DNA of 64,000 nucleotides from Parasitella parasitica NRRL 2501 (Eukaryota > Fungi > Mucoromycota). Positions within the stretch are counted from its first letter, which is position 1; each line of letters begins with the position of its first letter. A program made the position numbers and the translations under genes. Below, one piece after another: positions 6,371 through 36,960 of the stretch. The notes beneath the pieces are model-generated. The model did no database searches, was not told where the DNA came from, and saw only the letters and a list, made by a program, of their open reading frames with translations. Location: assembly GCA_025201805.1 (NCBI GenBank), contig MU619336.1, positions 58,925 through 122,924 of the forward strand, given 5' to 3'.

Positions 6371-7510
6371 TGAGCAAAGAGCAGTTGGCTTTTTTTTTTT
6401 TTTTTGTTGTTTCACCACTATTTTTATACAGTGCTGCTAGTCACCGAGGAAATGACTTTACGCAAATTAAATGTACTGTACCATGATTGTCATCATGATG
6501 ATTATATGGCATTTGCTACTTTCACCTATGTTAGCTCCTGAATTAGCGAAGTTTGTCTGTTTAATAGCATATATTTAGCCAATTAATCGAAGTCTTAAAA
6601 TTATCATGTAGATCATATTAATAATCACAAAGTGAGTCAAGTATGGCTAATGACTTCCACCCTTCAGTTATATACACAATGAAACCCTATACCAATCAAA
6701 GAATTTATATTTACTGGATGATCTCTATAGTGTTTTTAAATTTTCAAGTAGTTCTGCATAGATGATGGAGCTTCTCTTTTTAGTGTGTGTCTTGTAGTGG
6801 GAATGATCAATAAACTATCATACTTCACCGATTAAGATGCGCTTACACAAAGAAATTTTGATAAAGCAATAGAATTTCTCAAGAGCTATAAAATCAAATC
6901 GGTATACCGTAGTATGCTGACCTTTGAACAATTAATCGATGTAATCTGAGGCCTTTGAAAGGCTGCTATTTTATGATATTAGCACTTTAAATAATGTTTG
7001 GCAACATTTCACATTGAAAGATTTTACTGCCATGGATACTTTATCTTGCGAAAAAGCAATCTATTTTACTTTGTGCATATTAGAAATATGTATAAAACCA
7101 ATTGTTACCTTGTATAACAGTTTATATTTCATCCTGTGTAAGCTCATTGGAAGCATAAATATGCTCTAACTGCGATTATATCAATAGTAAGTTCCTTTAC
7201 TGATGCCCCCATCCTTACTGGTTCTTCCGTTGGCTCCCCCATTCTAACATTAGGAGCAGACTGTCTGATTTTAGGATAAAATAATTTGATAAAACGAACT
7301 TTGATAATAACAAAAGTAAGTTTTGCTTGAATGATGAAGAACATGGTGAAGAACAATTGAACTGGCTACAAGCGATCTCAAGACAAGTTCTACGTGCAAG
7401 CTACTATGTCAGATTACAATACCTTAGAATTTACAAAGCACAACTCGCATATGTTTTGTGATTTGCGCTTTTATTTAACGGGTTGATTGTCCCTTTTCGT
7501 AAAAAAAAAA

Positions 7511-7765
7511 AAGTACAATAAGCCTTGGGCTATTGTCTTGGAAGAGACCTTTATTTAAATTGTACACAATAACCACATTCTACTGCAGGTTCATAGAACA
7601 TTGTTATAAATACAATAAAGCATACTATCAGCTCATTCATATCATGAGATCATTCATAAAGCACCACAATAAATACAATAAAACGTACTAGAGCTCTTTC
7701 ATATCAGAAGCCTTATTTATTAATATACAATAAACCAGAGTTACATTTGAAAAGTATAAATACGA
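7511..7765 (+). promoter_or_regulatory. Promoter of orphan gene: ACAATAA motif cluster, imperfect tandem repeats and TATA box
   Basis: ACAATAA at ~7515, 7566, 7612, 7666, 7675 and 7727; unit TAAATACAATAAA..TACTA..AGCTC.TTCATATCA occurs twice (~7607, ~7670); TATAAATA at ~7755, about 70 bp before the ATG. Confidence 0.5.
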
Positions 7766-7826
7766 GTGCTATTAATTCAGTTTTTCCCCCATCTTAAACA
7801 CTCAATTACTCCCAATATCAACAACA

Positions 7827-9494
7827 ATGGTTCAAGAAAAAATATTCACTGGACTTGCTGCTTTGGACGAACACATCGAATTGCAAACTAAATCGAAACC
7901 TTTACGACTTTACAAGCCTGATCTTTCTGACGATCTCGATCCGAGCGAATGGGTTTCCATCCACGAATACGAGTTAATTAAATTCATTTCAAAGGACTCA
8001 CACCACAGCAATGTGATTACTCCACAAATGTTAAGTACATTAAAAGAATTGCGACTTAGCAACCCTGATCTTCCGCCTTTTTGCAACTGTTACGAAATTG
8101 AAGATTTGCCCGATTTTCCTGTTGAATTTTCGGATGAAGAAGTTGAAGAATTAAGAGCTCGGGACAAACGAGATAAAGCATACCACATTACTATGTTGTA
8201 CGAGAATAAGCCAGAAGAATTGGATCTATGTGAACTTAAACTTTCGGACAATGGCGACTATATTAAATTTATCAAGCCACACGTGGGCATTGAATGCCTT
8301 GGACTATACCAGCCCGTCAACTTGACTGCTTCTTCGCTTGAGTATTTCTTACAGAAACTACTAGGGTTGACATCCATCAAACTTGAAATAAGCTCTTCTA
8401 ATGATGCTGAATTGCAAACAGAAAAGCCTACTAATTGGAACAGCCTAATCACCGATTTTTGCAAGCGTCTCAAGGATTTTGAGGAATGCAAAATTGTGAT
8501 CAATTGCTCCGATTTTGAAGATTATTTGAGTCAAGTTAAAAATTGGGTCAAGGTTTTAAACGAAGTTGCTGGTTTGAACAAGAAAGGAGTTCCAAGCTCA
8601 ACACTTCTATTTACAGAAGGCAGTAAAGAGAATGAATATTTTATTATAATGGAGCAAAATGGTTCGTGTGTCATGTTTGTCATACCTAACTGCGTTGAAG
8701 ACAAAAGCATCCAACAAGTCATTGAATCTACAAAACCATTTTCACCCAAGGGCATCCTTATATCCTATCCAGAGAACTCTAGCTTTCCAGACAACTCTAG
8801 CTTTTTTGAAAAGTTTATAGACACGGTCAAGGGCTTTCGTCAAAAATCAGCTACAACCTCTTTGTCCGAGTTCGCCAAAAGCTGTATCAAACCATTAAAG
8901 CTTGATGATATCAGGATTTTCGACGAGAAGTTCTATAAAAAATTGAATTCCAAATCTGATAAGCCAAAAGCTAAAACTGGACACCAAACTACTTTGAATG
9001 ATGTTGTCTCTATGATCAACTATGGCGCTAAAATTTTACACTTGTCTAACCTTGATTTCTCTTGCCCCTCATTCAATGATCGAGAAATCAGCGAAAAAGA
9101 AAGTCCTGTAGATATCGATCAAATTTGTTTTGTAAACTGTGTGATTGATCCGTTGACATTTGGTGAAATGTTGTCAGCAATAGCAAAAACTGATAATTTG
9201 GTATTTGTTAATTGTACTTTCATGGCGCAATCTTGTAACAAACTCGAATTTGACTTCGAGAGAACAAATGTAAATAATTTACTATTGTTTCAGCCACGAG
9301 TAGTTTACAATGACAGCACTCCAGTTGCCCCAACTAATTGCCATAAATATGAATATAACGTAACTAAGGATGGCCTTCTTTGCCGAGAAACCTCTAGCGA
9401 ATTCCTCATTTCGATCCGATTCCATGATTGGAAAAAGTTTTCTTTTTATATGGATGAGGAAGTCATGCATTATGAGGAGGACGAAGAGCACTAA
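7827..9494 (+). CDS. Intronless orphan protein, 555 aa, with degenerate LRR-like beta-strand repeats
   Basis: Uninterrupted ORF with good ATG context (ACAACAATGG), TATA upstream and AATAAA downstream; intact paralogue at 34156-35805; periodic xLxLxx/IxFxNC strands. Confidence 0.85.
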   Translation: MVQEKIFTGLAALDEHIELQTKSKPLRLYKPDLSDDLDPSEWVSIHEYELIKFISKDSHHSNVITPQMLSTLKELRLSNPDLPPFCNCYEIEDLPDFPVEFSDEEVEELRARDKRDKAYHITMLYENKPEELDLCELKLSDNGDYIKFIKPHVGIECLGLYQPVNLTASSLEYFLQKLLGLTSIKLEISSSNDAELQTEKPTNWNSLITDFCKRLKDFEECKIVINCSDFEDYLSQVKNWVKVLNEVAGLNKKGVPSSTLLFTEGSKENEYFIIMEQNGSCVMFVIPNCVEDKSIQQVIESTKPFSPKGILISYPENSSFPDNSSFFEKFIDTVKGFRQKSATTSLSEFAKSCIKPLKLDDIRIFDEKFYKKLNSKSDKPKAKTGHQTTLNDVVSMINYGAKILHLSNLDFSCPSFNDREISEKESPVDIDQICFVNCVIDPLTFGEMLSAIAKTDNLVFVNCTFMAQSCNKLEFDFERTNVNNLLLFQPRVVYNDSTPVAPTNCHKYEYNVTKDGLLCRETSSEFLISIRFHDWKKFSFYMDEEVMHYEEDEEH

Positions 9495-9945
9495 CTTTAT
9501 GTAACCTAACCTCCTCAAAGCAATAGAGATTTAAAATAGTCTCTTTTTATATGTCTATGGTATAACTTTTATATGCATCTTTCCTTTGAAGTAAGATATG
9601 CCTTTCCAAGTTTATGAATAAACAGCTTTATTTTTATGCAAAATTATTACCTTATTCTTTGATATTTTCAAACCTTGCAAGAAATGCAACCTAGCCGATT
9701 GTCGTGTGTAGCAGTAGATAAAAATTCTCTATTTGATATATTGCTTTTAAATCAGCTAAATAGAACAACTAGTTCGATTGCCATTGGAAATTAGTCCTTA
9801 CTACTTCTTCTTTCTTTAGATGGCATTGCAATTGGATCAATACGATGCAAGACCTCAAAATAAATAAACCAACTGGATCATGTCATTGACGACGCAAATA
9901 GCAACACCCCTTCCGAAAGCCCTCTGGACAGTTACCAAATGCTAA

Positions 9946-11241
9946 TCTCTATATATACTGTACACTATTTTCAAAACTTATTCGCACAAGCTGAGAAAAA
10001 AATTGCCCACTTTTTGTTTTACTTTCTGCACACATCGTTTAAAGACTATTTTGAACTTAAAGATATGATATAGATAGCTTATTTTACAGCACGTTCTCTT
10101 CGTATTTTTTAAAAGTGTGCAAAAAAAAAAAATAGCGTGCAGAAATAAACCGAATAATTTCTGAAAATAGTGTATACATGTGTGGGTACCTCTATTGGTA
10201 TCATCATTGGTATGAGCTTGACCGAACCATAGGTTTTTATTAAAGTTATTTACTTGAGAGATCTAGTTGTATCTAGTAGCTCTTACGGTTTTAAAATTAA
10301 TTAATAAAATGAATAAATGTAATTATAAATTAGCTATCATACCCTTTGCTTCAGATTTGCATGTCTAGGTGCTAGATTAATACACTCAAGTGAATTAAAA
10401 AGTCAACTATTGCGGGAAATTCAATGCAAGAAACCATAAAAATACTTACTTTTAAAACCTATTCTGCTAAAATCTAGTAGCCAGACTTACTGTTTGGCCA
10501 TTTTTTTATTATCTTCCAGGATTTGCGAATAGTCTTACTATTTTTTTTCATCAATGTGTATAAAATTTTCTGGTTTTTAAATAGTATAGACGAATATAGT
10601 TAGAAAGATTTAGAAAAATAGTTACTTGATTAAAAAAACTCTTCATGCTCGCACTACACATTTTTAGCGCCTTTCGTCGTACAAGATAAAAAACACTGAT
10701 ACTTTCTTAAACGAGTTATTTTCGAACGTTACATTATCTCTGTGAACATTTTGTGGAATAGAGTCAAATTTCTGGTTCAACATATTAACATATTATTAAA
10801 CAGAACGAAGTGTTCAGCTTAAAAAATCGCCTTTTTTGGATTTCGAATCTCCTAATTTGGTTGATTCAAGCTATTTCTCCCGACTTTCAACATGATTTAC
10901 TCTGTTGAAAAAGCTTTTATTTCAAATCAAAATACACGACCATTTATTTCACGCTTTGTTGCATACGCACATATTTTTTTATAGTTTTCTAAAGCTTCTG
11001 TATATTTTTAATTAGTTTTTAAAATGAGATATACTTGATTTAACGCCGACTTTTCAAAAATCCGAAACTTGAATGGGAACTAAAAAACCAAACAAAGTAA
11101 TTATAAACTCTATTCCTCGTTGGATTTTAATTCTAAACGAGCTTTTATACACCCCCCCCCCGAACTACGGCGATATTTTTCGATCTTCGTTCTCATTGGG
11201 GGGGGTGCACAGTTCGCGCCTGCAGCGGGCTGTCCCACTTA
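9946..11241 (+). mobile_element. Candidate non-autonomous Helitron-like element
   Basis: Starts A|TCTCTATATATAC (Helitron-like 5' TC end); ends with a GC-rich imperfect hairpin GTTCGC-GCCTGCA-GCGGGC followed by TGTCCCACTTA (degenerate CTAG); non-coding interior; adjacent to a Pif1 relic. Confidence 0.35.
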
Positions 11242-11361
11242 ACACAATGTTAAATCAAACGAAATAAGAAACAATAAGTGGAAATAACATTTATGAATTG
11301 TATAAAGATATGATATATTATGATTATTTGGTATTTTTTTTGTTTAAATCCCCGAAGTTGG

Positions 11362-12185
11362 TTAATTCTGAAGAATCTCAGTGTAGACGACGTTTGATGT
11401 ATATTCTCCTTCTTGGCTTGGGGTTGATGATGATTCAGATGTCATCTGGCCTTTTAACTCGAGATATAGCAACGTATAATTGGCCATGCGAGAAAATTGA
11501 CACAGGAAGATACAGCCCTACAAAGTCCAGAGTTTGACCTTGCGATTTATTTATCGTCATGGCAAAAGCTGGTCTAACAGGGAACTGACAACGCTTAAAT
11601 TCTACGCCGACTTGCTCAACTATCGAGTTTAACGTAACTCTGGGTATGAGCACAACTTCAGCCTGGATAGTGTTCCTTGTGAATGCTCGACAAATAAGCC
11701 TTGTACCATTACAAACACCGTGAGCAGGATCGATGTTTCTGTGGGCTGAATAGGGAAGGAGCCATTGCCGATAGCAAGCAAAATTTTGTAATGACATGGC
11801 TTGTTGAACACTCGTGTTTGTTGTTAAGCTGAGTACTTGTACTTGCGGCCAAAGGTTTGAGGTCATCAGAATGCATGCTTGAATGATTTCTTCTTTACTG
11901 CCATGAGGAACAACAGGTAAAACTTGACGAAAATCGTCACCAAAATACAATATTTTTTCCTCCAAAGGGAACATCTGCCTGTCTTTCGTCTATTTGCTTC
12001 ATGGTATCTTTAAATGCCCTGTCTACTGTTTCAAGAACATCACGGCTGATCATCGATGCTTCATCCCAAAGAATAAGTCTTGCGCCAGGAGATCTGGGCC
12101 TCAAAGAACACACAGATGAATCATTGCATCTAAGAGGAATACTAAATCTTGAGTGAGCAGTACGGTCACCTTTTAAGCGCTGGAG
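11362..12185 (-). pseudogene. Helitron-type Pif1 helicase remnant, frameshifted and internally deleted
   Basis: RTAHSRFSIPL, ILWDEASMI, VPFGGK, DFRQVLPVV, GVCNGTRL, QFPVRPAFAMTINKSQGQTL, FSHGQLYVAISRV and TSNVVYTEIL, spread over different frames. Confidence 0.92.
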
Positions 12186-15100
12186 ACTATTTTTTGCGAT
12201 TTGTATCATTTTAATATGAGAGATGAGTAGATTTGAAACAACCTTGGTATTACTACCAATTAAGGTTAAATAGCTGCTGTACCTAGAACATTTTTATAGC
12301 GGGGGACTTTTCTTTTCTTCTTTGTTAATTCAAATGCACATTAAAACTATGTCAAAAGAACTTAAATAGCGAGGATATTCAATTATTATTATTAACAAAC
12401 ATACCTTTCCACAAGTTTTATCACGATTTTTTTATGTCAAATCCACAGTATTTCCAAGTAATTTTGATGATAAATGTAAAGCATTTTACAAGATCGCTAG
12501 ACGATTCAAATTGGATCGTAATTTCTCCGACATGGACTCTATTAGTCAATTTAGCAACCTCATTGAACTAGAAGCGCAAATACAGCACATCGCAAAAGCT
12601 AAAAAAAAATCATGTCGATTCGTGAAAGCGATATCCTTAAAATTAAAAAAGTCATTGGTTACTAATAAAGACTTGTTTGATTGGAAAGTTAATCATAATG
12701 CATTCAGTTTCATTAGGAAAAAAGTTATCATGAATATCAAATGTACTATTCCTCCAAGTACAATATGGGATTAGTGAGTATACAGTTCACTGTCTTTAAT
12801 GATGAAGTTTTCAAGATTGTATAAAGGAGGTGAGGTGATCAATTGAAACAGATGCTTACACTGGAATGTTTATATGAATTTTAACGATGATTCTTGACCT
12901 ACTCGACAACCCTGGTGACAACACTAGTATAAACACTGTCTTCATGAACGGCGAAACGCTGAATAAGTTCAGATTGCATTTCACCCGGCAACTCGAAATT
13001 ATCATCAGGGTCTTCAGTGCCTTCATGATGAATGAGACTGATAGTAACATCAGTGGTGCGAACAAAAATTTGAGGAAATTAGTTGCTTACAAAAGGAGTC
13101 TGATGACCACCTTCTTCAATTTACCTAATTTTTTGACACTTTTGAAGATCAAATTCCCCAGGAAAACGAAACTAGTTTGACAGGATATTTGAAATTAATT
13201 TGCCCAGCTTTCGAAAATAAATCTCCCGGTTTTTTACCAGCTCTGGTCAAAACAATTATTTTCCAGATTCATCCACAATCCTTCAATTACCTTCTGTGAA
13301 AAGATTTGTTACTTGATAAATAAAGAAAACTATTCATCGTCATCATAATCTTTACCATCATTTTCATCGTCTTCTTCTTCATCGTCTTCTTTTTCAAAAA
13401 TGGAATTTGCCATTCAAGCATTGTAGTTGTGCTTTTTCTTTTGATCGACTTTAGTTGAGACGTTTACGATGTCATTTTCGATACTGGAACTATTATTATA
13501 GTAATCTTACGTAGATCGCCCAACATTTCCCAAAAAAGAAAAAGTAATATTATATGATGCAAAATATTGGAGGTCTTGGCCATCATTAGAATTACAAAAA
13601 AAGGGACTCTTGAACTGACATTAGGCCTTATTACGAGTTACAGTGATAATAGGGCTTCTCTGTCACTAGCAATTAGCAATTTATGAATTATTCATAAATC
13701 ACACAAGGGGCCATTACAGCAAAATATTGTGTTCATTAATTACCTTCTTCTGCTTCCAGCTCGATGAGCCATACCTGTTTTATCATATTACTATGACGAA
13801 AGGTACACTTGTGGTATCAAAAATACTTACTTTATGGAGCTGTGTCATGTACTAAAAATATTCTTGACATGATATCATCTTCAGATAGATATTTTTACAG
13901 CTTAAAAGCAAGAACTATAGCCTTGTGTGCCATTTTTTGATTGTTTTTATAAACAAAAGTGCCCTGAAAACACCAGAAATAGTATCCATTGGGGAAAAAC
14001 TACATTATATATGATTTTGGCGCAATTTGAGCACGATTTTTTTTTCCAAGCAAAAAGAACGAATTTTTCAAATTTTTTCCTTGTATCCACGCATCCAAAA
14101 TCATTGATTATGCATTATCCTCGATTTTGACCTCAAAAATGCAGCTTTTTACTATAACATATATTGGAGGAAAATGATCGTTGTAGACCATTCCATGATC
14201 TGAAAGACTGGCAATGAGCTTTGATTAAGCAAAATGTTGATTTTTTCCTCTTAATCTGTTTTTGAGGTTTTTCGGCAGAACTCCTTCCATAAGCATACAG
14301 GAATTATGAAATGATACCATCTTGTAGAGCACCCAGAAATACAGCTATTATCATAGACTGATAGCCGGGGTATGCATAGTATCAGAGGATGATATCTTGC
14401 CTCAAAGAAGTAATTTTGGTTTCTAATTGTCCAAATGGAGTTTTTGAAAGAAGTTTTCCTTCCTAATTTTGGATGCGTTTAATCTCCGCTATCAAAGAAA
14501 AAATCGTGTTTTCTTTTGAAGAAAGCATTAGCTTTGAGAAGCAATAGCTTATCCAATTCAATAGAAAAACAATTTTAACCTATCTTTTTCAAATGCTGCG
14601 CTTCTTGGCTTTCTAATGGTAGTACTCGCACGTCTGTAACTGGCTTGACAATCTCACGCTCCGATTTTGAAAAATACTTTTCCGAAAAAGTCCAAAAAGT
14701 CGTTGCGTTTAACTGATGACAACTTAAAAAGTACAAAAAATTGCTCCAAACTATGCGAATATGTAATCAAAAGATGTCTTATAGTCTAATGCACTACTTT
14801 GAATTACTTGTTTTTGTGTTTGAGATCTTTAAACACTGTTTTCTTACAGTTCTCGTCTTTTTTCTGACAATAACACACTAAAGTTTCCGGCGCCTAAAAT
14901 CTACGCTGGGTTTGCAGACACACACTTTTGAACCATTCCAATATTACAGAAAAGACGGCACAGGTTTAAATAGCTGTTCTACTGCGCAACTGGATATAGA
15001 GAGCCCAGATTGGTGCTTGTTTGGCAAGACCTCCTGATCTAAAAGACACCAGATCTACTGAAGGTATAAGAAAGTGCCGGAGAAAAGGAAACAATTTGCC

Positions 15101-18407: not shown

Positions 18408-18412
<5 letters not shown>

Positions 18413-20666: not shown

Positions 20667-23600
20667 TGTAGTTAAAGTTGTGATTATTAAAGTCAATGAA
20701 GATAAAAATGAAAAGATGCGGTAAATTTTTGTTGGTATTTATACGTGAACGAAAAAGGTACGTGCATGAATAAACATGGCAAAATCCTTTAACCCATAAA
20801 ATGATGATGATGATTTGAAACACTGCATATTTTATCAGTCAGTCGTAAAACCTTAAATTTATTTTAACCATTTGGTTCACTGCTGCTAAATTTAAAAAAC
20901 AACGCCTTACTCAATATGCATTTTCTTTTAATTCTTCGTTGTTGATAGTGGATCAGTTCAGTACTCTGGTCAAGCTTTTTAGGTCAGTAATGTTAATAAA
21001 TAAAAAATACAAAAAAAAAAGAAAAACAATAAAGAACATTTTCTGGGGCTACGATGAATTAAAGGGTTGCATAAATTTTAAGTGATAAAGTCGCTGGGTA
21101 AGCTGAACAATTCTTGCGTTTTTCTTGTAATCTAGATTTAGAATCCCATCCCTTGTATCTGCTGGAGTTTTGGTAAACGTCCTTCAGCCCAGAAATAAAC
21201 ATTGAGAAAAATATATTGATCAAGAAACTACATCAACAACAAGCCCAAACGAGGCTGATATAACAGCCGACACGTACTGTGCTAGTTTTTGAAACCTTTA
21301 TCCCGTCCTTAACTGACTAAGGGGAGAAATTCACAGGGTGTATCTTTTATATCACCAATAAAATGGCTCAAAAACGCTTTTGCTCACTGACTAACCACTC
21401 ATTAATAAAGTCTCCTAAATGAAATAGCACGCATATTATTTTGCTATTGCTATTATAGCTCTCATTTCCCCCACCCCTTTATGTTTAAAATACAATAGTT
21501 ATTAAAATATATCGCCACTATTTGCCATCATTTCCTTCTGCATTATTAAACATAAATGGAATATTCAAATGATCAAATGGCTAAACCTTGTGGCATGCAT
21601 CTGGGATTCATGCAAAACGAGACTGTACCCAAAAATTGAACTTTTTGACATCTGGTAACCATGAAACAACATGGCCTATTTATTAAAGGAGCTTTCCATC
21701 ATACGAAATCGCATATTGAAGGCATGATTGTTCGATTATAACGAGACGCGTCAAATTAAATGTATTCGACCAGCATACATGATGTAGAATGACCTACTCA
21801 TGTTGCACACACATACACATACACACGCGCACAATTCTCCAACGAGTTTATATCCCTACCTTCTTTCATTACATCATAACATTTAATATATTATGTCCAC
21901 GCCATAAAAGTTTCTACTGTTAGTTCCAATACATAATAGAAAGATGTCGGTCAAGATCTTCAATTTTGAGCGAGTGCTACTGCTGAAAATGCTCTAAAAA
22001 AAGGATTTATTTATCTGTGTGGGCTGAAATTAAGTCCATATTCAATAATGTTGTCAAAACGAACAAAGTATTACAAGAGTTTTCAATTGCTATTCTGTTT
22101 CATGATGCTTAGTACTTAGTGCTTAGCGCTTAGGCTGTAAAGAGCCACAATCTAGAATATTATGAATCGTTACGGTACTGAGTTTAGTCGAATAAATCGA
22201 CAAATAGGTGATTAGTGCCAATAAAACTAATTGGACTATAAATCATGCCATTATACGATAAAGATTTCATAGCCGATTTTGCTTGGCAACAATAAGTAGT
22301 TTTTTGCTTTAACAACACTTGCTTAGAATTGATCATGGGAGCAAAAGTTACCGTATGACAAGATGTATGCCAAATACAGCCATTGAGATTGGATCTAGTC
22401 TTTTCAAAAACGATTATTCTTGTATCAAAGCAAACAATATAGAGATGTATCCATGCTATATCAAGTTTAATATTTTTGCTTATACATAAGCAAGCTTTAT
22501 TGTGTAGCCTGAATGGATCACTATCGGCTATGCACATGTATTTGTATCCAGGCCAAGATCAGATGACTACGAGAGTTTTATCGCTCAACTCTAGATCAAT
22601 ATATCGTTACACAGAATTTGATATTTTTTTCTCTATAATACAGTGCATTAGCAAATATTCATTTTGACAAGCTAGCGATATACCAGTAGATACGATCTCA
22701 CTTTTACGTTAGTATGTATATTCGAGTCAAGAAACCAATTCAAAATATAATGTAATTACCCGCATCTTGTGTATTTCGACTAAAAAATCAGTTTTGAATG
22801 CACAAATAATTATGCGGGATTAGTATAGTATTAGGCCTATTCTTTTTAACAAGAAATTTCCAAAAAAAAATATATCAAAAAGTTGTTCTGATGCACAAAT
22901 ATGTATCATGATCCAATGTCGCATTGTCACCCTAATATGCATGTACAAATGTATTAAAACAAAACTTTTAATAGTATTTGGCTGTTTATTTTGAATATTG
23001 GGTGAGAGATGTAATTATTATGGAGATTATAACAAGACATATTAGATGGATAGTCGTAACCAGTGGATCCTGTGGTTAATAAACCATTGCGGTATAACAT
23101 CAAATTCTTTCTATGATGCATTGATGTCTTGTCTGCATTTAATTTATACGTTTACTTAATATCTAACATATAGTTGTTGCACTTGCACAATACATCAGGC
23201 ACTACTTGCACGATTGACTTTTCAAGGGTTTTATTATCGAGGTAAATCGGCGTCATTATATACAAATATTATCATTTGCTTAACTTTTTGAATCCAAAGA
23301 CCTATTGAAAAGTTATAAACTTTGTATAATGCAGGCTATAGCAGCCTTGTTGCAGCAACAATAAAATAGAAACCGCTGCGATCAAGTAAACCTTCATGCC
23401 TTGCCATTTATGGTGGAAGTTATCAATAATCTAATAAATCAAGTGTTGTTTTTGGCCCGAGAAAATGTGATGAACCTACAAAAACTTTTTTAGGTAACCA
23501 TCGATATATAGGTCGTCTAGTGAAAATAAAGTTTGTATCAATAGCCCTGATCATGGCTGTATCAGACAATAACACATAGTCTGTGTTGTTTTTTATGGCA

Positions 23601-24329
23601 AATGATGTGCTTCAATTTACACTATATATACTTATTATAAGCCATCCGAACAGATAAAACGTGTACATGAAAAAATTTGACAGCTCTAATTTATCATATA
23701 CATATATCCTCTCTTGAGCGTTTCATCTAGCAGAATTTATGCTACTTTTGAATTATGTCCGTATCTCAAAGTGATGAATGAAGTGCAGTACCACACATAT
23801 TTACTACAAGTTCAAGTTCATAAAGCTCAAAAAAGTATGCTAAAAGTGAGGAAAAGAACCTGCACATCTCTCTATGTTATGATTATAAATGCCAAAAGTG
23901 AACTCAAAATGCGAGATTGCATCCTTGAGTGCACTTAATGGTGAAAAGGTTCCATATATCAGATAATAATTTCAATGCTTTTAGCTGATCAGATTAATAA
24001 ATGCAATTTACGCTTTGGCTTTGTCGTTTTGTACTTGCTGGAAAATCTTTTAATTGAGACCAATTTTCATATAGCTTGCAGCTTACATATTACAAAATGG
24101 GATACATGAAACAGATGAATGCAAAAATTGACAGCGATTGACACTTTATTTTGAATTACCTCAAGTATCAATGTCATTATTGTAATGCAAATGATTGTCA
24201 CCTTATTTGTTACACCGAGGAGCTTTTTATTGAATAAGAAAGGAGTTACTGGCAAGAGTAGATATTACGGTATGTAAATGAAAAGCGAATGTTGCGCATA
24301 CATTTTTTGCAGATATGTTAAACGATTGA

Positions 24330-25785
24330 TTATGACGATACTCTTCGAAATCGGCCTCTTTTCACACGTTCGGCTGAATGTAGAGCTGTGAAGGCGATCT
24401 TTTTTTTTCGTTGGGACGTACATTCTTCGCGATGTGGCCTTAATTGGAAAGACGAGCTAGTGGAAGTGTTAGTCAGAGTGGGAGGCCTAAAGAACCAAAC
24501 ACACAGTCAATGTTTGTTTTGTTAAGATCTACTTTATTCGTTTGAATACAATACCTCGTAGTTGTTAAACTGTGAGCTAATTTAGCATATGTGAATAAAC
24601 CTCCTAGTCCTTTCGAATATGAAGAAAACGGAACGATGAAAATCATGTAGCACAAAATTATCTATCCATAGTCCAGAATATATTAAGCGATGCCCCCGAA
24701 TCATTATACACAATTACATCTCTTACCATGTAAATAATATCGCTACTAGACTTCTCTGAACCGGCAGTTTGTTGCTTTCCATTCAATTTGTTTTTCAATT
24801 CCAAATTCTCATTTTCTAATTGCGAAACCTTTTCCAACAAACTTTGATTTGCACTACTAAGATCTGTGCATTGCTCTTCTAGTGCAGACAAGTGCTCGCG
24901 CTTTCTTTTGCGGGAGAGTAAAGCTGCAGCTCTATTCTTTATCAATCTTTCCTGACGCTTTATAATGGTAGCAGCTTTTTGTAGATCTGTATTGGAATTG
25001 ACAACAGGATATATGGCAGGGGCTCTGGTAGTCGACCCACTCGTATGTTGGTTGAGAGTTAGGGTCGATTTTATGTCTATCGACAATTCCTTTTTCGTCA
25101 TAAAAGATTCTCGGCTATGAGTGCTGTTGCTGGCAGCAGGCAAAATAGAAGGCAAGTGCTTTGCAGGTGCAGGGGCAATGACAGTTGGGATAGTGGAGTT
25201 ATGGCGAAGAGGAAAAGAAGTTAAACTTTCGCAACTGCTTGAAGATGCCACGCTATAGCTAGAATCTCGCTTCTTACGCCCACGCTTCTTTTTAGGCTGT
25301 TCGCTGTCAGAAGATGATGAATAAGAGCTTAAGGATCTTGGGGATGCTGGTGGATGCTGTACATTGTGGTTGTTTTGTTGCAAATTAAAATACGGCGGTG
25401 AACACACCATGTTGATTGTCGTGTCACTCATGTAGGCAGCAATTGATTGATGTTGCATCTGGTCATGGCTAGGCATCACGAATTGTAGGTTAGTAGTATT
25501 CAAAACATCAGTATGAAAGCATGGTGTGGTTGCAGGCTGATGCTGACGAAACAAATCATCATTAGGAGTTGAAGGAGCAGAATACCAAGTTGCATCGTTA
25601 TGATCATAGCCCGAAGATGCTATTGCCGTGGCATAGTTTAATTCTTGAATTGAACTGAATTTGGGTGCGGTTGGAGAAGGAGAAGCTGTAGAAGGTGCCA
25701 TATAATCAGGATTTAGGTACGACATTAGTAAGTCTTCTTGATCTTCTTGGAAAGCAGGGTCAGTCTTAATGCAGCGCTGTATCAT
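24330..25785 (-). CDS. bZIP transcription factor with putative C-terminal transmembrane segment (ATF6/CREB3-like layout), spliced; 3' end uncertain
   Basis: RQERLIKNRAAALLSRKRKREHLSALEEQCTDLSSANQSLLEKVSQLENENLELK; NLS PKKKRGRKKR; splicing at IIYM|GTAAGA gives IIYMIILCYMIFIVPFSS. Confidence 0.8.
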
Positions 25786-28189
25786 GGTTATACTTCTTGT
25801 ATGTATATATGTAATGTATTTTGCAAAGAAAAAGGAAAAAGAGAGGAGCATCAAGATCATGTAGATTTATTTCAATTTTAAGTTTAAAAACACTTAATGT
25901 GAACAAATATGGAAGCAAACTTCTCAGTACTCATTGCCCTGACAAGTGAAACGATGTGTGTCAAACTTTGCTGGCGGTGCTACACCAATGATGCAGATGG
26001 CAGCATATCCTATCATACCTCGATCGTACTAGCACATACCTTAATTATATCTATAAACAAATAATGCGATATAAAGGTATATTGCTGTGCTCAATTGTAA
26101 ACAAATAAATAGAATTCATTCAAGGCCCTTTATGAGAATGAACGATTACATGCTTTATACGCAAAATCTATCAGCGAGAACAAAAAATCAGGATCGACTA
26201 GCTCAAGAGCAAAGAATTCACATGCAATTGTTTTGGCCAGATTGTAGCATAGAGAATAAGGTACTGTGATTGTAAACGAGTCAATTTGAACAATTATATT
26301 CAAATTAATTTATTTATGCATATATAAACAAATGCTGTTTTTGCTAGATTTAAATACACATACAATGGTTTCATACTATTTTCAATGAAAGGAATACTGT
26401 ATATAAAATCTATAATCGTTGCCTATCCATTTGATTGAGCTTTTGCTCTCAAGCTGTTCAAAATAGATCACAGTAATTACACTTCAATTTGAAGCAACAT
26501 TTGCTTATAAGTTTGACACCACTCCAACACTAATTTTAGCGTGTCTTTTAATTCCATTAATGTGGGCGATTGTGTTTGTGATTTCAGTCCTTCCAGTATC
26601 ATAACAGGCTTATCTTTATAAGTTCTACTCCAATGCATTTAATGTAAATTTTTGCATGGTTCTTTTCCAATCAAGAAACTTACACAAATAAATGCTGATT
26701 GTCGGATCCTGCCTTTGTGCCGTGCTTTAAAAAATTGTAATCAAGAGCATATATATTGCATGCAATATAAACATCTTGGATGCAGAACTCAATTACAAGA
26801 TCTTGCTTCAAAGGCGGACTGAAAAACTAAAACGTGTACATTTTAATATATCAAGTCTGTCGCCTCATTACAGTTATTTTCGATACCTTTGGATGGCACA
26901 CTTTATAAGGGAATAAAAATGCTTCATTTGGGTAGTCAAATGCATGGAGTGCACGGTCCACATACTGATACATGTCCTCCAAAAGCTAATATCATCATAT
27001 AAGTGAAAAAAACGATGAAAAATCTTTTTCATTAAAGATACCTCAATAGTAGCTTGTTTGTATGAAGGCATAATAAATGTTTCTACTCGATTCATAGCCA
27101 GTGATATATAGTTAATTGCTTGTTGTGCCTTTTCATCAATTAATTTATGCTCAATTTAGAGTGCAAAGTTGCTTTTACCTGCTCCAAGAAATAAGGTACT
27201 TCGTTCGTAATTGTAGCTTTGATGGGAGTGTCTTGATGATAATTAACCAGTTTGATTTGAAGTTCCTAAATTCAAAGAATACAACATGAACATCATAATT
27301 CTTTTGCTGTAAATTACATGTATACCGCTTTTGTAATATGTGATCCGCTCAGAGTGATAAATCCTTTGATAGTTTCATTCCTAAATCATTTTTGATTAGC
27401 ACCTGATGTATACTGTTTATAATTGTTTCATGAGATTCTCACTGTGTTAGAGGTAAATAGTCCGTTTTGGCTATGTAATCAACGTTTTCGATTAGCAGTA
27501 CGTTATTGAAGAGAAATGTGTATGATTACTTTGGCTTGTTAAAATGGTTTGACTTTTCTGAATGTGAATAGAGGCTTTTATTAAAGGCGGCTAAAATAGT
27601 TATAATCATTTATTACCTCGAGTTGTATTTTTATTTTCTCCAATACAGGCGGGATGATATCGTGAAGAAGCCATTCTTTTTGTTTAACCTAGAAAATATA
27701 TTGTCAGAACTGTGTGTAAGACCTGGCTCTTTATAAATTACTGCTGTTTCATTTTCTTCGGTTTTGTGCATAGTACGAATAAAAAAAAAAGATCTCGAGG
27801 GAATCACGAAAGAAGCCAAGATTACATTGTGTTTGCGCATGATAATGTAACAAACACACAACGTCACGGTGAAAAGCAACAGAGTGTTAAAATGTTTTTC
27901 TAGGCTTACAAATGCGTTATATTTACAAATAAAAAGCACCGTATATTATGAAGGATTTTGAGAACATAAAAACAATTTTTGTTTTGGTCTATACAGATCT
28001 ATAGACAACATTACACGCGCTTGCATTAACTACTATGATCTTCAACATGAAAGTATTAAAGTACCGCTTTGTACTGATCAATACCGTATTTTTGGATGAA
28101 CAATGGTCCACACAAATAGTAGAAAGATAACATTACAGTAAGCCTTTATTGTTGCTTTTTACAAACATAAAAACCTAAAACAAACTTGC

Positions 28190-29746: not shown

Positions 29747-30124
29747 TCAAGTTCAAGGCAAATGAAGGAATTTTTTTTTTTTTTTTTTTTCATTCTTTTA
29801 AATTATCCTGGATACTCAAAAATGGTCACGAATGCAGTCCTTTTAATATGATTATAATAGATCTAAAGGATATATTTCCAATAAAATTTTACGATAGAAG
29901 TGCCATAGTCTAATCGAGTGTGTATATCTGTTTTATTTGGATCTATACTACTAAGCATTGCTTGTAAATGGTAATATTCATGAAAACTTGATAGAAAATT
30001 TTAAACGGCTCTTAAAGCGGTGTTTGTAAAATAGTTTTCATCGCTTTCTCAGCAGAGCCTTTTGACTCGCGAGCTTCTTTCACTTTTTAATGTATTTTTT
30101 TTCCATTTTATCATAAAAATTATC

Positions 30125-31363
30125 ATGTCAGAAGAATCGGATCCCTTTGAATGCCGTCTGTCATTTCTAGATCTTTTGAAAAAAGTCAATGCCTCACAAC
30201 AGTCTATACATAAAGTAGCCATTTATGCCATGCGACATAGAAACTTATGTGAAGATCTCTATAACTGTCTTATTGAACAGCTTGAACAGGTAAGGTTGTC
30301 TTTTTTTCTTTTATCGATTCGATTTAGTACTATTAGTGTAAATTATTTGATTCTACTATGGGGGAAGGGATATTTTGTTAAAAGATGCATGGATTTATGA
30401 GTGAGGAAACACATATTGTGCATTGGTGAATGCAAATCTATGGCAAGGGATGGAGTTGAGTAACTGTTAATTTGTACAGACAATCTTCAATTTTGTTTCT
30501 TTGCTCATGAATCTGTTGCATTGGGTTTGGATGGTGTATATTTTCTGTAAATTATAAAATTGAATAGAAAACCATAAACAAATATTAAATCGTCTCGTTC
30601 TTTTTGCATCTGTTTTCCCTAATTTTGTTGAATGATGATCATCTCTTATGTAGGCGTCACTAAACGCTAGGTTGAATATAATATATGTGCTGGATGCCAT
30701 ATTCTCGGCGAGTCAAAAGTCAAGATACTCGGGTTATATCGACTTGACACGGCCAGATCTGCCTCGAATAATCCATGCCGTTGTCGCTAATGGTCCAAAG
30801 GGAGTACTGAACATACCAAATACACAAAAGGTAAGATTTTTTACATTGCTTTGATTAATAATTGATTAAATACTTTTTTGTAGATTATAAATAATTGGAA
30901 GCGCAAAAATTACTTTGAAGCAAGTGAATTAGAGGAAGCAGAAAAGCCATTAATAGAGTGTGCATCAAGGTAACTGATATAATAGGAAAAAAGCTAGAGA
31001 AGACTTACAAATTTTATTATCTGATAGCTCAAGCCAAACACAATCAATTACCATTGACTCATTTTCAAAACAAGATATACTTCGTAGAATGGAAGAAGAT
31101 AGAGAAAGGGTAAAAACCATAGGAATTTAATTAAAAAACAAACAGATACTAATCCCAGGCAACAGCATAAGCGATTAAGAGAGGAGATATGGATACGACC
31201 GGCTGATGAGAGTCAATATGCAGAATTTGAAGAGTTTTGGAATACAACAGAAACACTAGACCCAGAAACCGATTATGAAATGATGATGGTTCAAAACATG
31301 TTGCGTCTCCCTAATTATCCTTGGAACTCAATGCTTGATCAACGATCAGCCATGCCCCAATAA
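30125..31363 (+). CDS. CTK3: CTD kinase subunit gamma (Ctk3/Lsg1-like), 5 exons
   Basis: DPFECRLSFLDLLKKVNASQQSIHKVA, EDLYNCLIEQLE, ARLNIIYVLD and C-terminal ILRRMEEDRER|HKRLREEIW. Confidence 0.88.
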
Positions 31364-32151
31364 ATAAACCGATTTTTATTAATGACAACTCTTTCCACAT
31401 ATAATTTTACCATTTAATGTACACAAGGATCAATAATTGTTTGATGGGCTTCACTCACTAATAAGGAATTGTTGTAGGGACAGTTATGGTAGTGAAAGGT
31501 GTGGTAGTACATGGCAAAGAAAATGCCTCTTTTATATGCATATATATCTCAAATTTGCGTGAGAATACTGTTCAAGTTTTTTAAAAAGCTCAAAATGACA
31601 TTTTATGTGTTACTTTGTTCGATACACAGAGCAAAATATCAGATCATCAAACAGAGGAATCAAGGAGGGACGAGTAGATTGAAGTTTCTTGCACCGAAAA
31701 CTTATTTATAGAGTGATTGATTGGGTGTCGAAATAAATTTCCAGTTTACGATGTCCAACAAATTTAGAGAAAAAATGTTCCAAAATGGTGAAATTAATAC
31801 ATAATGCTACTATCATTTAGCCGTGATCGTGAACAAACGTTTTACAAGTACTTGTATGAATTTATAAAGCATGGCAATTTGCAATCGCATTTTTGGACCA
31901 TTAATCTAATAAACTATGCTTGGAAAAAGTGTTGTGTACCTGTTTGACAGAAAATGCAAGTTACACCATGTTGAAAAATGAGTTAATTTGTAGAAGGATC
32001 TTTCTTCGGGTACTTGCTCGGAGCTATTATCTATATACCAACAAATTCAAGGTTCTGACGAATATAAAAAGAGGATAATTCAATGTCTTTGTTCTTCTGC
32101 TACTCCTTTCCCAGCAACATTGTAATCTCTGGTTTATAAAAGCACAACACA

Positions 32152-33572
32152 ATGTTTAATGTTCATCCAATGCAGTTGACACATGCACCTGAATTTCGAA
32201 TTCATTTGGACGACGATCAAGTAATACTTCATGGCTCAGCAGAAGAGTCGGCAGGTGTGATATTAAGAGGTAGTATCATACTGAACTGTCATGAGCAAAC
32301 CAAAGTAAAATCAATCACCCTGAAATTTACTGGCACTACAAGTGTCAATTGGACTGAGGGTGAGTGTATGGCATTGGCGCCTGAACAATGTCAAATAACG
32401 TCTTATTTCAAATATAGGGTTGGGCTCTCATCAAAAACATTACAGGGCAGAGCGTAAAATACTCGAAAAAGAATGGACATATTTAAAATTAAAGAAAAAG
32501 GCACATCATCTTTGCCAAGGACAGTATAAATGGGAGTTTGAGCTGCCTTTGCCGGGAAATTTACCGGAATCTGTAAATCATGAAATGGGGCAAGTTCGAT
32601 ACCGCTTGAAAGCTTATTGCGATAGACCAGCATTTTCAATGAATTATGTCGACAAACGTATTATCAAAGTAACCAGACTCATGTTACCATCCTGTCTTGA
32701 TTTGAGCCAATCTGTCGTAATCTCCAATGTCTGGGCTAACAAGGTAGCGTACGACATCAGTATCCCTTGCAAAGTTTTCTGCTCCAACAAGTCGATCCCA
32801 ATTTCATTTGACTTGCTACCAATTGCGCCAAATCTGAAGATTAAATCTGTTGCTTGTTCGCTGAAAGAATATGTCACTTGTTCTACTTTGGATCATTATA
32901 AAACCGAGGGAAAAGTTATCAACCACCTCCGTGATGATCGCTTGTCGATGGATGCTGCTACTGGACATTGGAGAAAGACCGAGCTGCTTCATGTGCCCTC
33001 TGAATCCAATCATATCACCTACGACATGTGCGGTGAGCTAATTCAGGTAAAGCATAAAATTAAGTTTGCCGTCGCTTTGCAAAACTCGGACGGTCATATT
33101 TCCGGTAAATATATCATGTACTTCAAACTTTAACCGAATGAATCTAACATGTATCTTATAAGAATTGAGAGCTGCAATTCCTGTCGTTATAGCCCCGATG
33201 CTTCCCGAAGACGATGACAATGTCCTGCCTGCTTATGAAGATGCCTGGCGATCCATACCTTATAATGTGGAAACATTGGCCCATATGATTGATATGGGTG
33301 AAGTGTCTCCATCGGCTGCTGCTGCTGCTCCTCCCCCTGCTCCTCCTGCTTTGCTAGCAACATCCGATTCACATTCAACTTTATCTTCATTGTCATCCAA
33401 TTCTGTCAATAGCAATAGTTTCAGTGAGAGAGATTACATGAGTCCCGAACCCTTGCCATGGATGGGTATTGATATATCTAGGGTACCATCATACACAACT
33501 GCTTTACGCACGGGCACTCCATGTACACTAACACCCTCACTTCCCAATTATGAATCGATTACTCTTGCTTAA
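32152..33572 (+). CDS. Alpha-arrestin (ART/Rod1-like ubiquitin-ligase adaptor), 3 exons
   Basis: Arrestin_N (LRGSIIL, YKWEFELPLPGNLPESV, VRYRLKA), Arrestin_C (HKIKFAVALQNSDGHISELRAAIPV) and PY-type motifs LPAY, VPSY, LPNY. Confidence 0.9.
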
Positions 33573-33705
33573 AAACAACTGTCGTATGCATATACCTCGT
33601 TTTTTGTAAATATTTTGCTCCTTTTTTATATAAATAATAATTTCTTGTCTTCAGAAGCTGTATCTCACAGGATCTCCAGCCTAGGACATGAATAAACATA
33701 TTTTT

Positions 33706-36700
33706 TTAGCATTTGGTAACTGTCCAGGGGTCTTTCGGAAGGAGTGTTGCTATTTGCGTCGTCTATGACATGATCCAGTTGGTTTATTTATTTTGAGGTC
33801 TTGCATCGTGTTGATCCAATTGCACAGCCATCTAAAGAAAGAAGAAGTAGTAAGGACTAATTTCCAATGGCAATCGAACTAGTTGTTCTATTTAGCTGAT
33901 TTAAAAGCAATATATCAAATAGAGAATTTTTATCTACTGCTACACACGACAATCGGCTAGGTTGCATTTCTTGCAAGGTTTGAAAATATCAAAGAATAAG
34001 GTAATAATTTTGCATAAAAAAAAGCTGTTTATTCATAAACATGGAAAGGCATATCTTACTTCAAAGGAAAGATGCATATAAAAGTTATACCATAGACATA
34101 TAAAAAGAGACTATTTTAAATCTCTATTGCTTTGAGGAGGTTGGGTTATATAAAGTTAGTGCTCTTCGTCCTCCTCATATTGCATGGCTTCCCCATCCAT
34201 ATTAAAAGAAAACTTTTTCGAATCATGGAATCGGATCGAAATGAGGAATTCGCTAGAGGTTTCTCGACAAAGAATGCCATCCTTAGTTACGTTATATTCA
34301 TATTTATGACAATTAGTTGGGGCAACTCGAGTGCTGTCATTGTAAACTACTCGTGACTGAAACAATAGTAAATTATTTACATTTGTTCTCTCGAAGTCAA
34401 ATTCGAGTTTGTTACAAGATTGCGCCATAAAAGTACAATTAACAAATACCAAAGTATCAATTGTTGCTGTTGCTGCCAACATTTCACCAAATGTCAACGA
34501 ATCAATCACACAGTTTACAAACCAAATTTCACGGATATCAACAGGGATTTCTTTTTCGCTGATTTCTCGATCATTGAATGAGGGGCAAGAGAAATCAAGG
34601 TTAGACAAGTGTAAACTTTTAGCGCCATTGTTGATCATAGAGACAACATCATTTAAAGTAGTTTGGTGTCTAGTTTTAGCTTTTGGCTTATCAGATTTGG
34701 AATTCAATTTTTCATAGAACTCATCGTCGAAAATCCTGATATTATCAAGCGAGAATGGTTTGATAGAGTATTCGATGAACTTGGACAAAGTGGTTGTAGC
34801 TGGTTTTTGCAGAAAGCCCTTGATCGTGTCTATAAAATTTCCCAAAAAGCTATACTCCTCTGGATAGGATATAAGGATGGCACCGGGTGAAAATGGTTTT
34901 GTAGATTCAATGACTTGTTGGATGCTTATGTCTTTATCGCAGTTAGGTACGACAAACATGAAATACGAATTGTTCTGCTCCAATATAATAAAATATTCAT
35001 TCTCTTTACTGCCTTCTGTAAATAGAAGTGTTGAGCCTGGAACTCCTTTCTCGTTCAAACCAGCAACTTCGTCTAAAACCTTGACCCAATTTTTAACTTG
35101 ACTCAAATAATCTTCAAAATCGGAGCAATTGATCACAATTTTGCATTCCTCAAAATTCTCGAGACTCATGCAAAAATCGGCGATTAGGCTGTCCCAATTA
35201 GTAGGCTTTTCTGTTTGCAATTCAGCATCATTAGAAGAGCTTATTTCAAGTTTGATGGATTTCAACATTGGTAGTTTCTCTAAGAGATACTCAAGCGAAG
35301 GAGCAGTCAAGTTGACGGGCTGGTATAGTTCAAGGTGTTGAGTGCGCTCGTGTGGCTTGATAAGTTTAATATAGTCGCCATTGTCCGAAAGTTCAAGTTC
35401 ACATAGATCCAATTCTTCTGGCTTATTCTCGTGCAACATAGTAATGTGGTATGCTTTATCTCGTTTGTCCCGAGCTCTTAATTTTTCAACTTCTTCATCC
35501 GAAAATTCAACAGGAAAATCGGGCAAATCTTCAATTTCGTAACAGTTGCAAAAGGGCGGAAGATCAGGGTTGCTAAGTCGCAATTCTTTTAATGTACTTA
35601 ACATTTGTGGAGTAATCACATTGCTGTGGTGTGAGTCCTTTGAAATGGAATTAATTAGCTCGTATTCGTGGCTGGAAACCCATTCGCTCGGACCGAGATC
35701 GTCAGAAAGATCAGGCTTGTAAAGTCGTAAATGTGCCGGAGTAGTGCACAAGTTGAGGTGTTCGTCCAAAGCAGCAAGTCCTATGAATGTTTTTTCTTGA
35801 GCCATTGTTGTTGATATCGAGAGTAATTGAGTGTGTAAGATGAGGAAAAAATTGAATTTATTAACACCTGTATTTATAATTTTTAAATGTAACTCTGGTT
35901 TATTGTATATTAATAAATACGGCTTCTGATATGAATGAGCTCTAGTACGTTTTATTGTATTTATTGTGGTGCTTTATGAATGATCTCATGATATGAATGA
36001 GCTGATAGTATGCTTTATTGTATTTATAATAATGTTCTATGAACCTGCAGTAGAATGTGGTTATTGTGTACAATTTAAATAAAGGTCTCTTCCAAGACAA
36101 TAGCCACAGGCTTATTGTACTTTTTTTTTTTTACGAAAAGGCACAATCAACCCGTTAAATAAAAGCGTAAATCACAAAACATTTACGAGTTGTGCTTTGT
36201 AAATTCTAAGGTATTGTAATCTGACATAGTAGCTTGCATGTAGAACTTGTCTTGAGATCGCTTGTAGCCAGTTCAATTGTTCTTCACCATGTTCTTCATC
36301 ATTCAAGCAAAACTTACTTTTGTTATTACTAAAGTTCGTTTTATCAAAGTATTTTATCCTAAAATTAGACAGTCTGTTCCTAATATTAGAATGGAGGAGC
36401 CAACGGAAGAACCAGTAATGATGGGGACATCAGTAAAGGAACTTACTATTGATATAAGCGCAGTTAGAGCAGATTTATGTTTCCAATGAGCTTACACAGG
36501 ATGAAATATAAACTGTTATACAAGGTAACAATTAGTTTTATACATATTTTTAATATGCACAAAGTAAAATAGATTGCTTTTTGGCAAGATAAAGTATCTA
36601 TGGCAGTAAACACTTTTCGATATGAAATGTTACCAAACATTATTTAAAGTGCTAATATCATAAAATAGCAGCCTTTCAAAGGCCTCAAATTACATCGATT

Positions 36701-36907
36701 AATTGTTCAAAGGTCAGCATACTACGGTATACCGATTTGATTTTATAGCTCTTGAGACATTCTGTTGCTTTATCAAAATTTCTTTATGTAAGCGCATCGT
36801 AATCGGTGAAGCATGATAGTTTATTGATCATTCCCACTACAAGACACACACTAAAAAGAGAAGCTCCGTCATCTATGCAAAATCACTTGAAAATTTAAAA
36901 ACACTAT
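33706..36907 (-). repeat. Copy 2 of the ~3.2 kb cassette, lying between the convergent arrestin and P450 genes
   Basis: Reverse complement of 6727-9945; starts ~130 bp after the arrestin stop and ends ~54 bp from the P450 stop. Confidence 0.95.
34156..35805 (-). CDS. Intronless orphan protein, 549 aa, paralogue of 7827-9494
   Basis: Intact ORF colinear with the 555-aa protein; same C-terminus YEEDEEH; one 6-aa indel. Confidence 0.85.
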   Translation of the reverse strand: MAQEKTFIGLAALDEHLNLCTTPAHLRLYKPDLSDDLGPSEWVSSHEYELINSISKDSHHSNVITPQMLSTLKELRLSNPDLPPFCNCYEIEDLPDFPVEFSDEEVEKLRARDKRDKAYHITMLHENKPEELDLCELELSDNGDYIKLIKPHERTQHLELYQPVNLTAPSLEYLLEKLPMLKSIKLEISSSNDAELQTEKPTNWDSLIADFCMSLENFEECKIVINCSDFEDYLSQVKNWVKVLDEVAGLNEKGVPGSTLLFTEGSKENEYFIILEQNNSYFMFVVPNCDKDISIQQVIESTKPFSPGAILISYPEEYSFLGNFIDTIKGFLQKPATTTLSKFIEYSIKPFSLDNIRIFDDEFYEKLNSKSDKPKAKTRHQTTLNDVVSMINNGAKSLHLSNLDFSCPSFNDREISEKEIPVDIREIWFVNCVIDSLTFGEMLAATATIDTLVFVNCTFMAQSCNKLEFDFERTNVNNLLLFQSRVVYNDSTRVAPTNCHKYEYNVTKDGILCRETSSEFLISIRFHDSKKFSFNMDGEAMQYEEDEEH

Positions 36908-36960
36908 GTATATATATAAGTTTATCTAGAGGCAGGGATATGAAATGAAAAAAAAATTAA

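Follow-up and report, generated by a model that had tools for sequence, protein, structure and literature searches.

The genome of Parasitella parasitica NRRL 2501 contains, within a stretch of 64,000 nucleotides on contig MU619336.1 (positions 58,925 to 122,924; hereafter the window, in whose own numbering all coordinates are given), a 3.2-kb block that is present in two copies in inverted orientation, each carrying an intact intronless gene. We put at roughly 0.6 the probability that this pair arose through a one-off duplicative insertion, of fairly recent date, that involved a functional host gene, and not through a recurrent mobile element. As indicated by profile comparisons, the gene is an F-box-less, chimeric offshoot of a lineage-specific, intronless F-box/LRR family.

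The duplicated block

Copy 1 of the block occupies positions 6727 to 9945 on the plus strand and comprises a 1.1-kb 5' flank, the open reading frame (ORF) and a 0.45-kb 3' flank, as delimited by inverted-repeat pairs, the identity profile and end alignments. Copy 2 lies at positions 33706 to 36907 on the minus strand and fills the space that separates the arrestin transcript from the P450 transcript at their 3' ends. The two intervals are linked by five collinear inverted-repeat segments with 93-97% identity, and in a global alignment with 400-bp flanks the identity falls from approximately 96% to approximately 30% inside a few bases at both block ends, confirming the inverted duplicate with abrupt ends that was described in the initial annotation of the window. 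The intact intronless ORF of about 550 aa and the approximately 450 bp of 3' flank attributed to each copy were also recovered: the ORF of copy 1 (7827 to 9494, plus strand) encodes 555 aa and that of copy 2 (34156 to 35805, minus strand) encodes 549 aa. Two descriptions of the 5' part, however, were not borne out. The supposed upstream relic is not apparent, as the 1.1-kb 5' part contains no ORF of more than 70 aa and no match to residues 1-235 of the F-box/LRR family at E<=1, and the supposed repeat-rich promoter comes down to one 12-bp unit present twice at 7331-7355, the sole result of Tandem Repeats Finder in the 5' part. The 5' flanks of the two copies (6727-7826 and 35806-36907) differ at 53 positions, 28 of which have G/C in copy 1 and A/T in copy 2 and 9 the reverse; unlike in the 5' flank, the directions of such differences are balanced in the ORF.

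The two copies lie about 24 kb apart, and the 23.8-kb segment separating them contains ordinary host genes (Kre9-like, bZIP, LRR, CTK3 and arrestin). A search of the whole genome (32.8 Mb in 450 contigs) gave exactly two matches to the block, copy 1 as the query returning itself at 100% and one further match at 94%. The 36-nt left and right ends of the block are present at these two copies only, genome-wide, with up to three mismatches allowed, so the additional copies with shared ends that had been anticipated for a mobile unit did not appear.

The duplication is real and does not represent an assembly artefact. Two contigs of 15.4 kb and 4.0 kb from a DNA run (X2) span the junctions of copy 2 with 0 mismatches, and further contigs from this run lead out of the block into precisely the sequences that flank copy 1; as all four junctions are reproduced in this independent run, the duplication is not a misassembly, a risk that the initial annotation had raised. 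In addition, 81-90% of sampled words of the copy 1 stretch were present in six public runs. Run X2 is identical to the assembly, and the runs holding the block resemble the assembly strain. An assembly artefact or collapsed haplotypes would therefore be barely credible: apart from the general risk posed by 94%-identical repeats nothing speaks for it, and against it stand the position of both copies, inverted, on one contig, the contigs that cross the junctions and the words of copy 1 in the six runs.

Insertion marks and tests for mobile elements

The sequence ATCTCTATA flanks copy 1 as a perfect direct repeat of 9 bp, at positions 6721 to 6729 on the left and 9945 to 9953 on the right, and is a putative target-site duplication. 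When a 3.2-kb segment was placed at random in the window, a flanking repeat of at least 9 bp (with a slack of +/-4 nt) was obtained in 100 of 200,000 placements (5e-4). The perfect repeat thus indicates that copy 1 is an insertion, into the sequence ...GGATG ATCTCTATA TATACTG..., and the pre-insertion (empty) site would read GGATGATCTCTATATATACTG. The left flank of copy 1 was considered as a repeat able to supply such an empty site and was rejected, as it is unique in the genome. The homology between the two copies continues into the repeats on both sides, by 3 nt (ATA) on the left and by 1 nt (A) on the right, the last three nucleotides of the left repeat and the first of the right one being common to the flanks of copy 2, and these overlaps look as junction microhomology would. 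No flanking direct repeat was found at copy 2, whose end has just 6-7 A.

No terminal inverted repeats (TIRs) were found at either copy, the best local end alignment scoring below the shuffled mean, and Pfam searches detected no transposase domain in the block proteins; on both points the initial annotation was right. Its suggestions as to what might have moved the block fared less well. For cargo of a Mutator-like element (MULE), TIRs are lacking and the genome holds one weak match to a MULE transposase (PF10551), with a stop codon. A Helitron would have TC at its 5' end, CTRR with a subterminal hairpin at its 3' end and an insertion site between A and T without a target duplication. The shared boundary of the block shows no 5' TC, its 3' end reads CTAA, without a GC-rich hairpin, copy 2 is followed by A, so that it does not sit between A and T, and copy 1 has the 9-bp duplication. 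Retrocopying mediated by a long interspersed nuclear element (LINE) was likewise considered and rejected, since the 1.1 kb upstream of the ORF is without RNA contigs and copy 1 has no poly(A); the absence of introns is uninformative in this respect, because the whole gene family is intronless.

The block resembles Pack-MULEs and other transposon-captured cargo in that a host gene was copied with its flanks as a block, and a 9-bp target duplication has the length typical of Mutator-like elements. It differs from them in the lack of TIRs, the presence of only two copies, the restriction of the target duplication to one of these and the near absence of MULE transposase from the genome, and also in its cargo, which is a complete selected gene and not a fragment. 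Of the proposal that the block is a self-contained mobile unit, one part therefore stands, namely that the 5' flank, ORF and 3' flank were copied as one piece and that copy 1 bears an insertion mark, whereas repeated mobility does not agree with the two copies found, an outcome that the initial annotation itself had named, along with syntenic presence in relatives, as telling against it.

The block gene and its family

The two block proteins are 84% identical, and the sole indel between them, six codons in frame, is due to an 18-bp tandem duplication (2.1 units) within the ORF of copy 1 (8768 to 8804, plus strand; Tandem Repeats Finder and alignment). Although the gene had been regarded as an orphan, a search of the genome at the protein level gave weak matches to uninterrupted frames of 600-690 aa (600-735 aa across the family) on contigs C106 (a cluster), C58, C70, C149 and C20, and in four of five paralogues tested an F-box-like domain (PF12937) was found at the N-terminus. 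A profile of nine paralogues aligned with the block proteins in hhalign at 99.6% probability (E 8.6e-24), with residues 127-536 matched to columns 236-625, while tblastn gave family matches down to E 6e-22 and phmmer matches to P0004-P0012. The family profile identified approximately 18-20 intact members in the genome, together with several pseudogenes and fragments, and tandem clusters were observed. The block ORFs are single, uninterrupted and intronless, as in the family, and the lack of introns that the initial annotation had pointed out is no mark of foreign origin, being shared by all of the paralogues.

Several further observations concern the family as a whole. Pseudogenes with stop codons and 255-aa fragments were located at C9:361227-365408, C1:313585-314573 and C20:226487-227767, as well as on C73 and C191, and a 4594-aa protein in ENA (P0003), which matches the family in 18 stretches, probably results from the fusion of several genes of a tandem array into one gene model. 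Other family members were examined as possible recent duplicates of the block, and this was rejected, as their nucleotide identity of about 70% is confined to the coding part and no flanks are shared.

The family appears to be narrowly distributed. Among 1.84 billion representative sequences, HMMER found 11 relatives besides the paralogue, with at most 33% identity, and all of those with a named source were from Parasitella; a typical family member as the query matched Parasitella proteins only. In a word-indexed search of 5.8 billion proteins the block proteins matched only each other, and the proteins annotated in the other Parasitella assembly include no orthologue. When the shared region was used to build a tree, the two block proteins fell outside all other members, on a very long stem of 2.0 changes per site. 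A full-text literature search joining Parasitella parasitica with F-box returned nothing on this family, its match concerning another fungus.

The two block proteins differ from their paralogues at the N-terminus. Unlike in the paralogues, the PF12937 F-box-like motif is absent, and neither the ORF nor the 1.1 kb preceding it contained an F-box relic (family residues 1-235). In its place are 126 novel residues (7827 to 8204 in copy 1, plus strand), modelled as disordered, for which Pfam gave no match at E<=10 and for which no relative was found anywhere in the genome. The whole proteins and their separate halves were also without a Pfam match. Residues 54-107 are identical in both copies, which suggests that the new N-terminus is apparently under constraint.

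The remaining part, residues 127-555 (8205 to 9491, plus strand), corresponds by homology to columns 236-625 of the profile built from the F-box family and is predicted to fold as an LRR solenoid. An AlphaFold model built on an 18-row alignment showed disorder over residues 1-127 followed by alternating strand-helix repeats, at a mean predicted local distance difference test score of only 57. When this model was compared with 48,161 solved chains using VIA-align, all 50 of the 50 best matches were LRR proteins, aligned over residues ~120-555, with middling Z scores (RanGAP 9.6, FBXL17 8.7, FBXL2 8.4 and TIR1 8.3; Rad7 was also among the matches). Foldseek against the PDB gave nothing at E<=0.001, its weak rows being mostly LRR proteins, and the leads from the ESM Atlas were FBXL-type clusters with low scores. 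We infer that the protein is an LRR binder no longer able to recruit an SKP1-cullin-F-box (SCF) ubiquitin ligase. It could serve as a decoy, competitor or adaptor for the targets of the family, in a fast-changing recognition role.

Two reports on plants and nematodes describe F-box gene families that expand, decay and diversify quickly (PMC3030570, PMC8665587). The family described here is like the FBXL-type birth-death families of Caenorhabditis and plants in having LRR solenoid members with an N-terminal F-box-like domain, clusters, pseudogenes and fast evolution, with a dN/dS above 1 in its youngest pair. In contrast, the two block proteins lack the F-box and have an unrelated, partly conserved 126-aa N-terminus, so that a role as SCF receptor cannot be assumed for them, and in the databases searched the family is so far confined to Parasitella.

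Selection and expression

Between copy 1 and copy 2, the nonsynonymous divergence (dN) was 0.083 and the synonymous divergence (dS) 0.051, giving a dN/dS of 1.65, compared with a divergence of 0.050 in the 5' flank and 0.023 in the 3' flank; the nonsynonymous divergence is twice that of the flanks. The nonsynonymous excess was significant in Fisher's test (p 0.03), in a spectrum-aware binomial test (p 0.002) and against the flanks (p 9e-6). In addition, the frame stayed open in just 0.7% of neutral simulations with 117 substitutions, and the intact frames of both copies thus indicate that both genes have been maintained. These comparisons indicate a protein that changes faster than neutral, as expected under positive selection. 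No third paralogue able to feed divergent patches via gene conversion was found in the genome, and no concentration of substitutions on predicted strands was observed between the copies. The protein branch leading to copy 2 (0.17) is longer than that leading to copy 1 (0.043).

RNA from both copies is present. Run X7 can be recognized as RNA because its contigs skip the GT..AG or CT..AC introns of the arrestin and P450 genes, and it includes short contigs of both copy types within the ORF, at a word depth of approximately 4-5 compared with 12-21 for the neighbors; contig depth is a poor measure, and these data show the presence of RNA and not its level or ends. No contigs from this run fell on the non-coding parts of the block, including the 1.1-kb 5' part.

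Genomic setting and synteny

The arrestin gene (plus strand; stop codon at 33570-33572) and the P450 gene (minus strand; stop codon at 36961-36963, placed by joining four RNA-supported exon pieces) are convergent, and the distance between their stop codons, when copy 2 is subtracted, is approximately 186 bp, in good agreement with the gap of about 190 bp given in the initial annotation. As the RNA contigs of run X7 end at 33679 for the arrestin transcript and at 36925 for the P450 transcript, only 27 and 18 bp separate copy 2 from the ends of the two convergent transcripts. At the other locus, a 5' ORF piece of the MFS gene (minus strand) lies approximately 290 bp to the left of copy 1, and the block is thus upstream of this gene, as had been noted.

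Copy 1 had further been placed beside Helitron debris. A broken PIF1-type helicase relic (11435 to 12209, minus strand) was indeed found 1.5 kb outside the block, in two ORF pieces that match profile positions 66-223 together with 2B and UvrD_C parts, and no Rep/Helitron_like_N part was found near it; the Helitron label is no more than plausible. A Tc1/mariner-type miniature inverted-repeat transposable element (MITE) of 214 bp, with the termini TACACTATTTTC..., ~70-bp TIRs and a TA duplication, is located at 9961-10174 and begins 7 bp beyond the right 9-bp repeat of copy 1. It belongs to a family with at least 69 matches in the genome, including members of 0.6-1.6 kb on C1, C99, C114 and C193. 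It is only because of this element that the right flank of copy 1 has further matches in the genome, and its repetitiveness was rejected as a feature of the block, to which the MITE is unrelated.

In the contigs of a further run (X10) over positions 32350-38300 of the window, the differences from the reference are nearly all C>T (260) or G>A (691) and occur roughly as often as C or G does in the sequence; the run is evidently a bisulfite-type library of the assembly strain. It appears to be fully converted over the block, with no sign of dense cytosine methylation there.

Over the interval that runs from the Kre9-like gene to the stop codon of the arrestin gene, the other Parasitella assembly (CBS 412.66) and the window are collinear, the comparison reaching 125 bp past this stop. 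The DNA identity between the two assemblies is approximately 77% in the Kre9 region, and the protein encoded by the bZIP gene between the copies (24658-25860) is 69% identical to its orthologue in that assembly and 61-63% identical to those in Mucor. A run from 2014 with the same species label (X11) had no sequence of 80% or greater similarity, the arrestin and P450 genes included. Judging from these identities, the two public assemblies labelled 'Parasitella parasitica' are very far apart and probably belong to different species. In M. lusitanicus the bZIP gene directly abuts an Exo_endo_phos gene, and relative to that arrangement the segment from bZIP to P450 is inverted in the window. The breakpoints of this inversion, at about 21900-24300 and 38900-40880, are not at the block copies, and the inverted arrangement is common to both Parasitella assemblies, so that the inversion is old and unrelated to the duplicated block.

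Origin of the duplication

On the reading that we favor, a member of the F-box/LRR family would have lost its F-box, which docks to SKP1, kept the substrate-binding LRR solenoid and gained the novel 126-aa N-terminus. The block, with 1.1 kb of upstream and 0.45 kb of downstream sequence, would then have been copied in inverted orientation from the arrestin-P450 site to the MFS site, over 24 kb on the same chromosome. The new copy would be copy 1, which may have entered a staggered break and left the 9-bp target duplication. Judging from the ATA and A microhomologies at the junctions, the likely mechanism is break repair or template-switching during replication from a nearby donor, rather than the action of a transposase. 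Both copies would subsequently have been retained, transcribed at a low level and diverged under positive selection on the protein. Templated insertions and dispersed duplications attributed to microhomology-mediated break-induced replication or synthesis-dependent strand annealing (PMC8421209) have in common with this case the insertion of nearby sequence in inverted orientation on the same chromosome, microhomology of 1-3 nt and a short target duplication; the insert described here differs in its size, 3.2 kb being far above the usual, and in carrying a whole gene, and the mechanism would be read from one event.

Several observations weigh against such a one-off duplication. The position of copy 2 within 27 and 18 bp of the neighboring transcript ends resembles the insertion of the same discrete unit, and a duplication with random endpoints from a resident donor does not predict so snug a fit; circumstantial as it is, this is the strongest point for copy 2 being an insertion as well. 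A 9-bp target duplication is classically the signature of a transposase or endonuclease. New copies often evolve faster, and yet copy 1, which bears the target duplication, has the shorter protein branch (0.043 vs 0.17). Moreover, the choice of donor site and the mode of repair are both read from one pair of junctions, and every DNA run with the block resembles a single strain.

Alternatively, the block could be a non-autonomous mobile unit with defined ends that inserted at least twice, once at each site, and was mobilized in trans by a transposase or by a LINE endonuclease and reverse transcriptase. The same abrupt ends at both loci, the target-site duplication at copy 1, the exact fit of copy 2 between two convergent 3' ends and the intronless, self-contained character of the block are all consistent with this. 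We nevertheless regard it as unlikely, as a unit of this kind would be represented by two copies in 32.8 Mb with its ends nowhere else, and it would lack TIRs as well as the Helitron 5' TC and 3' hairpin, in a genome nearly devoid of MULE transposase. Mobilization by a LINE agrees poorly with the absence of poly(A) at copy 1, with the 6-7 A without a flanking repeat at copy 2 and with the 1.1-kb 5' part, for which a retrocopied transcript would need the RNA contigs that are missing; the other family members, in turn, are old duplicates at ~70% nucleotide identity with no shared flanks. Less probable again is that the two copies arose as duplications at the two breakpoints when the 23.8-kb segment was inverted through staggered breaks, in which case the block would never have inserted. 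The inverted copies do bracket ordinary host genes, a 9-nt TA-rich run lies to the right of each copy in inverted orientation, and the region was inverted earlier relative to M. lusitanicus. Under such a model, however, there is no reason to expect the perfect 9-bp direct repeat that surrounds copy 1, the TA-rich run is of low complexity and self-complementary, and the breakpoints relative to M. lusitanicus lie elsewhere (~21.9-24.3 and 38.9-40.9 kb) and, being common to the other Parasitella assembly, are older.

The block gene had also been compared, by analogy, with selfish genes, that is, meiotic drivers or toxin-antidote systems of the Spok, wtf or nematode type. The likeness to Spok of Podospora and wtf of S. 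pombe lies in a lineage-restricted, duplicated, fast-evolving single-gene unit. A selfish gene would explain the duplication, the rapid protein change and the lineage restriction, and it would fit the dN/dS above 1 with intact frames and the lack of an orthologue among the proteins annotated for the other Parasitella assembly. Spok proteins, however, have nuclease and kinase domains and wtf genes encode a multi-pass membrane protein with two transcripts, and the block gene resembles neither in sequence, domains or architecture: it has no Pfam domain, a predicted LRR solenoid fold, no sign of two overlapping products and no multi-copy spread beyond two linked copies. A dN/dS above 1 is the sole feature that fits a conflict gene, and it is also usual for the substrate-binding domains of F-box/LRR proteins. 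One report links ubiquitin-ligase adaptor families to hybrid incompatibility in Caenorhabditis (PMC12951971), and two others treat rapid diversification as normal for the substrate-binding domains of F-box/LRR proteins (PMC8665587, PMC3030570). Overall, we consider a selfish gene very improbable. Somewhat less remote, although still improbable, is a conflict gene of a fusion mycoparasite, in which a ligase-free LRR 'receptor' would bind fast-changing host or non-self targets or block its F-box relatives and would travel on a 3.2-kb unit that inserts with a 9-bp duplication, without TIRs or an enzyme of its own, a mode for which there is no described family.

Implications

With the label of orphan corrected, a one-off duplicative insertion of the block would make this gene a small, clean illustration of the way in which new genes arise within a fungal gene family, through loss of the F-box, gain of a new N-terminus, duplication together with regulatory flanks and positive selection. 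If relatives carried the block at other sites, the finding would gain in importance, as it would point to an undescribed way of moving whole genes. The same would apply if the F-box-less protein interfered with SCF adaptors or acted in the fusion between Parasitella as a parasite and its host.

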